Below, one piece after another: positions 53,073-56,323 of a stretch of DNA of 64,000 bases. The notes below the pieces were generated by a model that ran no database searches, was not told the DNA's origin, and worked only from the letters and a program-made list of their open reading frames with translations. Every line of letters starts with the position of its first letter. Within the stretch, counting starts at the first letter, position 1. The DNA lies in the IMG/VR virus record IMGVR_UViG_3300042889_001503, positions 208,438 through 272,437 of that record. One strand, 5' to 3'. Both the position numbers and the translations under genes were made by a program.

Positions 53073-53101
53073 AAAAACCCCCTTAATTGGGGGTTTATTT
53101 T
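53073..53101. terminator. Terminator between convergent genes
   Basis: AAACCCCC/GGGGGTTT. Confidence 0.75.
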
Positions 53102-53287
53102 TTAAGACATAATCTGTTGTAACTTATTCATTATACGACCCTGTTCTTCTTGGAGTTGTCTAATTTTCAGTAACTGATTTGAATTTAGGTCGATACTCTC
53201 ACCTTTAATTGAGGCGATTTCGTTAGACAGCTTATCAAAACTATAAGTTAATTGGCTGTACAATTGGGCTTTTTGGTCGTTGTTCAT
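53102..53287 (-). CDS. Small coiled-coil protein
   Basis: 61 aa ORF. Confidence 0.6.
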   Translation of the reverse strand: MNNDQKAQLYSQLTYSFDKLSNEIASIKGESIDLNSNQLLKIRQLQEEQGRIMNKLQQIMS

Positions 53288-53362
53288 ATCCCAATAATAA
53301 ATAAGTAAATTAAAAAGTAAAACATATTGATTTTTTATCTGAGTATAGTATATTTATTACCA

Positions 53363-53444
53363 ATGACGAGATACAAACTATACACGCCGAACAATTATAT
53401 TACTTAACAAGTAAGTCCCTATTTTATTTTAGGGACTTTTTTTT
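53363..53444 (+). promoter_or_regulatory. Leader peptide plus terminator (putative Asn-sensing attenuator)
   Basis: ORF MTRYKLYTPNNYIT (53363-53407); terminator AAGTCCCTA/TAGGGACTT plus T-run (53413-53444); competing ACTTA/TAAGT pairing. Confidence 0.55.
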
Positions 53445-53480
53445 GCCCATACGTAAACAATTAAAATTAAATATAAAACT

Positions 53481-54308
53481 ATGAAACAAACAAAAACTTA
53501 CCACGAATTGGTACAAAAAATGAGAACGTTCTTTGTAAACAAGAACTTTATTGAGGTTCCATCTCAATCACGATTATCTATTTTAGCTGCTTGCGAAAAT
53601 CCACATTCAGTTAAAACATTTGAATATGGAGGTGAAATTTGGCCGTTACCACAGACAGGACAAATGTGGTTGGAATATGAATTATTGAAAAATCCTGAAT
53701 GGGACGGTGTATTCTGTATATCAACATCATACAGAGAAGAGAAAAATCCAATCCCGGGTCGTCACGAATTAATCTTCCCAATGTTTGAATTTGAATCAAA
53801 AGGAACGATGGAAGATTTGGTTGCATTAGAACTTGAATTGTTACAATTCTTAGGATTTGATTCACCGGTTGAGGTAAACTATGAAGATGTGTGTAAAGAA
53901 TACGGTGGTGTATCCATTTTAGAGGACGAACACGAATCAAGAATGTGGAAAGAAAAAAGTGAGGTTATTTCATTACAAAACTTCCCAATTAGAACAAACC
54001 CATTTTGGAATATGAAACATAATTCAGATAACATCTTCAATAAGGTTGACGTAATCCTTTTTGGGCAAGAAACAATTGGTTCAGCTGAGAGAAGTTGTGA
54101 TGTTGTTAAGATGAGAGAGATGTTCTATACCATAGAAAATGGTGGTTACTCTCAGAAACTATTTGAATTATTTGGGAAAGATAGAGTTGAGAAAGAATTG
54201 GAAGAATTCTTATCTTTGGACTTCTTCCCACGTTTTGGTGCGGGGATTGGTCTAACAAGATTGGCGAGAGCTTACAATATAAATAAAGAATTAGTTGAGA
54301 CATATTAA
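53481..54308 (+). CDS. Class II aaRS catalytic-domain-only protein (AsnRS paralogue, asparagine synthetase AS-AR type)
   Basis: LPQTGQMWLE, STSYREE...RH...FPMFEFE (motif 2), ETIGSAERS, GAGIGLTRL (motif 3); no anticodon-binding domain. Confidence 0.8.
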   Translation: MKQTKTYHELVQKMRTFFVNKNFIEVPSQSRLSILAACENPHSVKTFEYGGEIWPLPQTGQMWLEYELLKNPEWDGVFCISTSYREEKNPIPGRHELIFPMFEFESKGTMEDLVALELELLQFLGFDSPVEVNYEDVCKEYGGVSILEDEHESRMWKEKSEVISLQNFPIRTNPFWNMKHNSDNIFNKVDVILFGQETIGSAERSCDVVKMREMFYTIENGGYSQKLFELFGKDRVEKELEEFLSLDFFPRFGAGIGLTRLARAYNINKELVETY

Positions 54309-54328
54309 AATGAATAGTATTTATTACT

Positions 54329-54526
54329 ATGAAGAAATTTTTAACATTTTTAATAATATGGATTGGTAGTAATTTGGCAGTACCTTTTTGGGTTGTTGGT
54401 CACGTTCATTTAAGTTTGAATATCTATAAAGATATTTATGAAATCTTGGCTTCTTGTGGTATGAACATATTAGTTTTGTTGGCTTTTTGGTTTGAATGGA
54501 AAAAAGAGAAAAAAAAAGAAAATTAA
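54329..54526 (+). CDS. Small membrane protein
   Basis: Two hydrophobic segments; TATTTAT at 54318-54324. Confidence 0.6.
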   Translation: MKKFLTFLIIWIGSNLAVPFWVVGHVHLSLNIYKDIYEILASCGMNILVLLAFWFEWKKEKKKEN

Positions 54527-55201: not shown

Positions 55202-56323
55202 ATGAAAAACCTATCAAAAGAAGAATTATTAAGCCGTCTTGAGGCAATTAACAGAAGTAATGCTATTATTTATTTCGATTTATCGGGAATTATATTAGGT
55301 GTTAATGACATTTTTTTGGTGGCAATGGGGTATGGAATCGGTAATCACGATGAACTTATTGGTAAACACCATAGTACTTTTGTATGTGAAGAATATGCAA
55401 AGTCACCTGAATATGAAAAATTTTGGGACATATTAAGAAGTGGTAAGTACTACCAGGGAGAATTTGAAAGGAGAAGAAAAGATAGAAGTCTTATAAATCT
55501 TCAAGCGACTTATAATCCTATTTTTGATGATAGTGGTAAGATTACTAAAATAATGAAAATCGCTACTGACATTACGTCAATTGTTGATAGCAAGAAACAA
55601 ATAGACGCAATTAACCGAAGTACTGCTCTTATTAATTTTAATACAGATGGATTTATATTAGATGTAAATTCTATATTTTTAGAAACTATGGGGTATAAAC
55701 CCAACGAAAAAAATAATTTAATAGGGAAACATCACAGTGTTTTTGTAAGTTACGAGTATTCAAAGTCCGATGAGTATATTAAGTTTTGGGAAAATCTAAG
55801 AAAGGGTAAGTTTTTTGATGGAATATTTGAAAGAAGAAAAGTAGATGGTTCTATTGTTTATTTACAGGCATCTTATAATCCTGTGGTTGACAGTAAAGGA
55901 AATATTACTGAAGTAGTTAAAATTGCGACAGATATTACTGAGTCAGTAAATAATAAGAAAAAAATAAATGAACTTACGACTAATTTGACAATTGAGTTGG
56001 AAAACTCTCAAAAACTTAAACACTCAATTGAATTAGAAAAAAATGCCGCTCTGAATGATTTAGATGTAGTATTGAAAAAGAGTCAAAATGAGTTAATAAA
56101 AATAATTGTTAAATGTGCATTGGCTGTTATAGTTGGTGTTGGTATTGTGACAACTATGTTATATTGGGTGGCTATTGTGACAAATCAAGATACACAAATT
56201 ATTGGTTCAACTTGGTCAAATATGTTTAGTGTATTATTAACTAACGCATTTTCAATCGTTGGTACAATTATGGGAATTAAATACGCCACGCAGGATGGTA
56301 GTAATAAACCCTCAAGTAATTAA
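55202..56323 (+). CDS. Tandem PAS/PAC sensor fused to coiled coil and two C-terminal TM helices, no output domain
   Basis: Two AINRS...IGKHHS.FV...FW..LR.GK...F.RR.......LQA.YNP..D..G.I....KIATDIT repeats; TATTTAT at 55165-55171. Confidence 0.85.
   Translation: MKNLSKEELLSRLEAINRSNAIIYFDLSGIILGVNDIFLVAMGYGIGNHDELIGKHHSTFVCEEYAKSPEYEKFWDILRSGKYYQGEFERRRKDRSLINLQATYNPIFDDSGKITKIMKIATDITSIVDSKKQIDAINRSTALINFNTDGFILDVNSIFLETMGYKPNEKNNLIGKHHSVFVSYEYSKSDEYIKFWENLRKGKFFDGIFERRKVDGSIVYLQASYNPVVDSKGNITEVVKIATDITESVNNKKKINELTTNLTIELENSQKLKHSIELEKNAALNDLDVVLKKSQNELIKIIVKCALAVIVGVGIVTTMLYWVAIVTNQDTQIIGSTWSNMFSVLLTNAFSIVGTIMGIKYATQDGSNKPSSN

Follow-up and report, generated by a model that had tools for sequence, protein, structure and literature searches.

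A candidate Asn-codon leader and terminator in front of an AsnRS-like gene in a lake-water jumbo phage

What controls a stripped-down asparaginyl-tRNA-synthetase-like gene that a jumbo phage places directly behind a tiny reading frame and a strong transcription stop signal? The window analysed here is a stretch of 64,000 nucleotides, the last 64 kb of a 272-kb virus contig from lake water (32% G+C). A sequence-only reading of it had proposed that a 14-codon ORF with tandem Asn codons, followed five nt after its stop by a terminator, senses shortage of Asn-tRNA and induces an asparagine synthetase of the AS-AR type, with ACTTA and TAAGT pairing to sequester the start of the terminator stem. Every sequence feature described in that reading is present in the DNA. 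The interpretation placed on these features is only partly supported: the Asn-codon leader and terminator hold up when related phages are compared, whereas the antiterminator, the enzyme assignment and the direction of control do not follow from the evidence.

A short ORF and a terminator in a divergent intergenic region

The locus is made up of the following parts, in window coordinates.

53075-53096 (no strand assigned): bidirectional terminator between the convergent phosphoesterase gene and the 61-aa ORF.
53102-53287 (minus): divergent 61-aa ORF with its own TATTTAT motif and no PHROG match.
53327-53357 (plus): promoter-like region, with TTGATT at 53327-53332 and the phage-wide motif TATATTTAT at 53349-53357; TATTTA ends 6 nt before the ATG, and a promoter scan finds TTGATT-16-TATATT.
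53363-53407 (plus): leaderless-type 14-codon leader ORF, MTRYKLYTPNNYIT plus stop (TAA at 53405-53407).
53390-53395 (plus): tandem Asn codons AAC AAT, 20-23 nt upstream of the stem.
53413-53444 (plus): intrinsic terminator, with a 9-bp, G+C-cored stem (53413-53421 / 53430-53438), an 8-nt loop (53422-53429) and a 3' arm that runs into eight T (53437-53444); folding energy -12.8 kcal/mol.
53445-53448 (plus): GCCC directly after the T-run.
53449-53480 (plus): A-rich 32-nt spacer with no promoter motif and no Shine-Dalgarno sequence.
53481-54308 (plus): 275-aa gene for a predicted AsnRS-type class II catalytic core without an anticodon-binding domain.

Because the upstream neighbour lies on the minus strand, a correction to the original context, the element sits in a divergent promoter region and needs its own promoter, and the hairpin cannot be the terminator of an upstream gene.

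On its own, the short ORF is unremarkable. Random short ORFs of this genome carry 6.6% Asn, the probability of at least two Asn in 13 codons is 0.21, and NN occurs in 4.9% of 3224 such ORFs. To ask whether the arrangement is nevertheless conserved upstream of homologues, a check that had been named in advance, we collected 259 loci, which gave 128 non-redundant upstream regions. Of these, 97 have a hairpin and T-run terminator within 140 nt upstream of the gene, with its 3' end, where measured, 16-56 nt before the start, and 89 have a short ORF ending at that hairpin. In 85 of the 97, a TATTTAT motif followed by an ATG is also present. The hairpins differ in sequence from family to family but all remain paired, and GCCC is conserved in most of the related loci. 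The module is confined to homologues at least 60% identical to the window's protein and occurs with none of 17 more distant ones; a scan with the distant homologue P0182 found no viral locus. Within the 272-kb genome, this is the only one of 71 terminator-like sites with the motif and a short ORF in front, and GCCC is likewise unique among the terminators of this genome.

Asn codons and an open frame up to the hairpin

The leader peptides fall into about 28 families that cannot be aligned with one another, although seven variants of the window's own peptide occur in relatives. In a first set of 20 representatives, Asn makes up 24.1% of in-frame codons, compared with 10.7% in shuffles (0 of 5000 reach the observed value), 5-6% in the other two frames and 6.4% in the window's proteins, and there are 15 NN pairs where 2.6 are expected. 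Lys is as composition predicts, and Tyr, His and Asp are not enriched, which argues against sensing of Q-tRNA through NAY codons. The enrichment was replicated on held-out families with the motif, where the Asn share is 20% against 11.3% in shuffles conditioned on an open frame (p about 0.001), with 8 NN pairs against 1.7 expected; Lys and Ile match the composition. Over all 28 families Asn accounts for 88 of 426 codons (21%), 24 families have at least two Asn and 13 have NN, and AAY triplets fall 88/25/24 in frames 0/1/2. The first 15 codons of 30 ordinary genes with the same start geometry have 6.9% Asn, indicating that the bias is codon-level, specific to Asn and specific to these leaders. 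A protein-binding triplet repeat of the TRAP type was set aside on reasoning alone, since AAY triplets that share the reading frame of the ATG point to translation rather than to protein binding. The signal is not uniform: one leader (L157) has no Asn at all, Asn codons peak 5-8 codons before the stop (at -36 to -19 relative to the stem) and are rare in the last four codons, and six families have NN exactly at the first stem bases (-3/0).

Two indirect arguments suggest that the ORF is translated. First, TATTTA(T) is strongly positioned in this phage, ending 5-6 nt before the ATG of about 27-30 ordinary genes and 15-19 nt before about 33 others, whereas only 3% of ORFs have a Shine-Dalgarno-like sequence and start regions are A-rich. 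This reads as a promoter element that produces leaderless or very short-leadered mRNAs in a Bacteroidota-like host, a host assignment that is itself an inference, with a neighbouring gene matching Flavobacterium phages; the leader ATG has exactly the leaderless geometry. Second, when the ORF is defined only by the motif and the first ATG, its stop lies at -16 to +15 nt from the first stem base in 54 of 58 unique leader peptides and none ends earlier, whereas shuffled leaders stop early in 59% of trials and at the stem in 30%. The remaining four peptides run through the hairpin, and in one such leader, L014, the ORF stops 6 nt before the ATG of the gene. Four metatranscriptomes were examined and hold only contigs of relatives, which break inside the leader and carry no information on starts, ends or strand, with DNA carry-over possible.

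To determine whether an alternative fold could compete with the terminator, we folded the leader plus 5' arm, without the 3' arm, in the 28 families. The mean energy is -3.4 kcal/mol, against -3.2 for shuffles, and in most of the families no base of the 5' arm is paired, whereas the terminators range from -6.6 to -14.4 kcal/mol, all but three at -10 or stronger. The ACTTA (53402-53406) and TAAGT (53412-53416) segments are indeed complementary, but the helix is worth only -0.6 kcal/mol and is not conserved, being lost in the leader designated L004; the best local helix is -1.8 kcal/mol, touches two stem bases at most and is also lost in L004. Thus, neither an antiterminator nor a pause hairpin of the trp/his type was found in any of the 28 leader families. 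A search of Rfam at a permissive threshold returned only sub-threshold chance matches.

The predicted enzyme and its tRNA-Asn neighbours

The 275-aa protein matches Pfam tRNA-synt_2 (6.5e-13) and aligns only to the catalytic part of AsnRS/AspRS, from about residue 140 of those enzymes, so that the N-terminal anticodon-binding OB domain is absent. No curated NCBIfam model comes near its cut-off: archaeal-type asparagine synthetase A (AS-AR; NF005053) scores 15.1 bits against 322, EpmA 19.9 against 286.9 and asnS 16.4 against 414. PHROG 29758, to which the family corresponds, carries 'unknown function'. A profile built from 45 diverse homologues finds PDB entries in the order AsnRS (4e-14), archaeal AspRS (2e-12), AS-AR (3p8t, 3.5e-6) and EpmA (7e-5), and the AF2 model (pLDDT 96) superposes best on AsnRS catalytic domains. 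The ATP- and amino-acid-binding residues of class II motifs 2 and 3 are conserved, with R85, E87, R94-H95, E103, E105, R204, R251 and R260 present in at least 37 of the 45 homologues, Q58 is invariant, and E65 of the stretch QxxQxxLE, which aligns with QSSQLYLE of AsnRS, is present in 39 of 45. When we sought an archaeal AS-AR sequence for a pocket comparison through NF005053, no control genome reached the cut-off, so the Asn-versus-Asp pocket argument rests on the AsnRS alignments alone. As judged from sequence and model, the protein is predicted to be a live adenylate-forming enzyme with an AsnRS-like pocket, nearer to AsnRS than to AS-AR or EpmA, and its assignment as an AS-AR or AsnA-type asparagine synthetase is not supported by any curated model.

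An independent link to tRNA-Asn comes from marine cyanophages. In Prochlorococcus phages P-SSM7, P-SSM2 and P-SSM5, the homologue (annotated 'tRNA ligase') is followed after about 10 nt by a tRNA-Asn(GUU) gene of 87-88 nt with a long variable arm, and the same is true of a separate marine contig, L088, whose tRNA-Asn is 85 nt; overall the tRNA gene lies 10-18 nt downstream. Of 72 further marine loci with enough downstream sequence, 66 have the same arrangement; in five of the other six ARAGORN finds a tRNA-like gene at the same position with an unclear or Lys anticodon call, and in one (L338) it finds none. These marine loci have no leader or terminator, whereas ARAGORN finds no tRNA in the 272-kb genome studied here, which speaks against a phage tRNA-Asn as the signal in this phage. 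Two clades thus tie the same enzyme to Asn decoding by different means, which argues strongly that the Asn codons of the freshwater leaders are no accident.

A ribosome as a possible antiterminator, and its closest relatives

The same layout recurs in dozens of related phages, so it is very probably a new, ribosome-operated switch tied to asparagine decoding. The specific explanation that we favor, although tentatively, is a terminator-only attenuator operated by the ribosome. In this view, the phage motif starts the transcript at, or 1-2 nt before, the AUG of the leader, and the AsnRS-like gene, 42 nt beyond the terminator and without a promoter of its own, is made only from transcripts that read through. 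In the absence of an alternative RNA fold, only the ribosome translating the leader could stop the hairpin from forming, by standing at or next to the 5' arm as the polymerase reaches the T-run, and the Asn codons would make its arrival time depend on the supply of charged tRNA-Asn. Quick Asn decoding would then give read-through and enzyme, and slow decoding termination, which is the opposite of induction by Asn shortage. Consistent with such a mechanism, in E. coli a stop codon 5 bp before terminator tR2 cuts termination from about 90% to under 10%, only when the ORF is translated; the effect fades with distance up to about 27 nt, and translational pausing or slowed elongation restores termination (PMC4824070). 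The leaders place their stop where that effect is strongest, and an ORF kept open right up to the hairpin fits a ribosome that must arrive there to prevent termination, so the anatomy favors this polarity over the one assumed in the sequence-only reading. The analysis itself establishes the conserved architecture, the frame-specific Asn enrichment, the frame kept open up to the hairpin, the absence of an antiterminator and the class of the enzyme, whereas the transcription start (by a host or a phage polymerase), translation of the ORF, the response to Asn, the catalytic activity of the enzyme (be it charging of tRNA, synthesis of Asn from Asp, ATP and ammonia, or transfer of Asn elsewhere) and, above all, the polarity are inferences.

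The polarity in particular is not settled. It is the reverse of every known cognate-codon leader and of every known aaRS control, and a supplier of Asn or Asn-tRNA that is switched off by Asn shortage makes little physiological sense. In addition, in E. coli the first ribosome rarely catches the polymerase within the first 100 nt (PMC4824070), and here the terminator lies only about 50-85 nt from the start, so that under either polarity a pause would be needed, for which T8 followed by GCCC is only a candidate. The coupling model also does not explain the scarcity of Asn in the last four codons, and in the six families with NN at the first stem bases a stalled ribosome would itself mask the hairpin.

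The same element with the polarity of the sequence-only reading is less likely but not excluded. A ribosome stalled at the Asn codons would stay parked within reach of the hairpin and block it, whereas in plenty it would finish at the stop codon and leave while the polymerase waits at a T8-GCCC pause, which the conserved GCCC could lengthen. This is the regulatory logic of known cognate-codon leaders and of aaRS genes such as pheST and the T-box genes, the cyanophage tRNA-Asn suggests that the enzyme serves Asn decoding, and the position of the Asn-codon peak is compatible with the E. coli observation that a ribosome up to about 27 nt from the hairpin can still repress termination (PMC4824070). 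However, there is no antiterminator, most Asn codons lie too far upstream to touch the stem, and a ribosome at a stop codon 5 bp from a terminator gives read-through in E. coli, so that the state of plenty would also be on. Nor would anything select for keeping the ORF open for 4-5 codons beyond the Asn cluster, as 54 of 58 leaders do.

Less likely still is a constitutive coupling device without Asn sensing, in which the mini-ORF only brings a ribosome to the hairpin to set a fixed, low read-through level and AAU/AAC codons are simply the best way to write a fast, unstructured, G-poor, non-slippery A-rich frame. The leaders are indeed 52% A and essentially unstructured, their peptide sequences are not conserved, one lacks Asn, and the L014-type leaders that cross the hairpin have few Asn. 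However, only Asn is enriched, about twofold, other leaderless-type genes do not share the bias, and it is hard to credit as coincidence that the gene controlled is an AsnRS relative whose cyanophage homologues sit beside tRNA-Asn. Finally, an independent tiny gene or small RNA with its own terminator, with the AsnRS-like gene read from an unrecognised promoter in the spacer, is very unlikely: promoter, short transcript and terminator do form a complete unit, and a weak below-threshold Rfam match to an sRNA family covers the hairpin, but the spacer lacks the phage's promoter motif and at 16-19 nt in some relatives is too short for a promoter, neither peptide nor RNA sequence is conserved between families while codon content and ORF end are, and the module travels only with this gene.

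A broader possibility, which we consider doubtful, is that phages carry a minimal AsnRS core that works with tRNA-Asn without reading the anticodon, which marine cyanophages pair with their own long-variable-arm tRNA-Asn and freshwater phages instead gate with a new kind of amino-acid sensor, a leaderless, terminator-only attenuator in which the ribosome is the antiterminator and ample Asn-tRNA, not shortage, switches the gene on. Leader-peptide attenuation is a textbook mechanism, known for a handful of amino acids, almost only in bacterial chromosomes, and always with competing RNA folds. What would be new here is an Asn-specific, leaderless, fold-free and phage-encoded version, widespread in lake viromes, where hundreds of contigs carry the arrangement in 28 independently diverged leader families. 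The suggestion that few such attenuators are known in phages is fair: literature searches found neither a described Asn leader peptide nor a characterised phage AsnRS-like enzyme, although absence from the literature searched is not proof. The locus also gives the first functional handle on a very large, unnamed viral protein family, with more than 8000 clusters at 90% identity, which two independent signals now tie to tRNA-Asn.

Among known systems, the element most resembles the pyrE (rph-pyrE) and pyrBI attenuators of enterobacteria, in which a single terminator hairpin lies directly after, or inside, a translated ORF, there is no antiterminator fold, a ribosome close behind the polymerase prevents termination, and the stop-to-hairpin distance of a few nt is critical (PMC4824070 and the pyrBI work cited there); the L014 leader ends just before the gene as the pyrBI leader does. 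In those attenuators, however, the variable is polymerase speed, set by UTP, whereas here a cognate-codon bias points to ribosome speed, set by Asn-tRNA, and the ORF is leaderless, much shorter, encoded by a phage and placed before an aaRS-like gene. The classical leader-peptide attenuators (trpL, hisL, pheL, thrL, leuL, and pheM before pheST, itself an aaRS operon) share a short ORF enriched in codons of one amino acid, followed by an intrinsic terminator and a gene concerned with that amino acid, but here there is no pause hairpin and no mutually exclusive antiterminator, the stop codon abuts the terminator, Asn is not among the described specificities, and the predicted polarity may be reversed. 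The polycysteine leaderless short ORFs of mycobacteria (Canestrari et al., 10.1101/834739) are likewise sensory mini-ORFs rich in codons of one amino acid that control downstream genes of its metabolism through ribosome pausing; there, the stalled ribosome opens a structure that hides the ribosome-binding site, which is translational control, whereas here the only structure is a terminator 42 nt before an unstructured start region. As for the enzyme, archaeal AS-AR, bacterial AsnA and EpmA (PoxA/GenX) are, like the phage protein, class II synthetase catalytic cores without an anticodon-binding domain and of similar size and fold, with AS-AR chains aligning at TM 0.68-0.70 by target length, but by sequence the phage family is nearer to AsnRS, its pocket motif is of the AsnRS type, and its cyanophage homologues are paired with a tRNA gene.

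A tRNA-Asn gene beside marine homologues, and the breadth of the enzyme family

Homologues of the enzyme in marine T4-like cyanophages are followed within 10-18 nt by an unusual tRNA-Asn(GUU), as observed at the following homologue loci and at 66 of 72 loci among L265-L344:

L260, 4784-4870, tRNA-Asn(GUU)
L261, 3292-3379, tRNA-Asn(GUU)
L262, 3265-3352, tRNA-Asn(GUU)
L088, 1411-1495, tRNA-Asn(GUU)

The tRNA is 83-94 nt long and has a long variable arm, a 3-bp D stem and, in P-SSM7 and P-SSM2, an 8-bp acceptor stem. The juxtaposition of an AsnRS core that lacks the anticodon domain with a class-II-shaped tRNA-Asn looks like a dedicated pair, although this is inferred from gene order and predicted tRNA shape alone. 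When ARAGORN was run on the jumbo-sized phage contig that contains the window (G000; 272,437 bp), which CheckV estimates to be 91% complete, no tRNA gene was found.

The enzyme family also occurs in giant-virus metagenome bins (the GVMAG contigs L096, L097, L099 and L100, with 23-26% G+C) and in a high-G+C phage contig (L094, 59% G+C), in each case without a leader or a tRNA neighbor. The family is far broader than the clade carrying the putative attenuator.

Sequence motifs at start codons and terminators

Across the whole phage genome, a motif, TATTTA(T), is located at two fixed distances from start codons: 5-6 nt for about 27-30 genes, implying leaderless mRNAs, and 15-19 nt for about 33 genes. 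Only 3% of ORFs have a Shine-Dalgarno-like sequence. Examples of the motif within the window are:

54318-54324, before ORF 54329-54526
near 53298-53304, minus strand, before ORF 53102-53287

Directly after the T8 run of the leader terminator is a GCCC sequence (53445-53448), which is found at the same place in most of the homologue loci L002-L081 and is conserved across many leader families, yet occurs at no other terminator of this AT-rich genome. It might set a pause at the end of the U-tract. We also note that, in the ORF list of the window, a 373-aa ORF (55202-56323) appears to have two internally repeated halves of about 125 aa and a hydrophobic C-terminus.

Variation in the region upstream of the gene

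A different clade of homologues (loci L048, L050, L052, L059, L063, L066 and L067) has another conserved upstream module, located about 60 nt before the gene start. It consists of a GATATATAC-like motif, a variable G+C hairpin, a run of about ten A, and TTTCT before the ATG, and there is neither a T-run terminator nor a leader ORF.

Among the loci that have the leader, there are variants (L014, L027, L130 and also L121) in which the leader ORF runs through the terminator hairpin, and these ORFs carry few Asn codons before the stem. In L014, the leader ORF stops 6 nt before the ATG of the AsnRS-like gene. The arrangement is reminiscent of that of pyrBI, with possible translational coupling.
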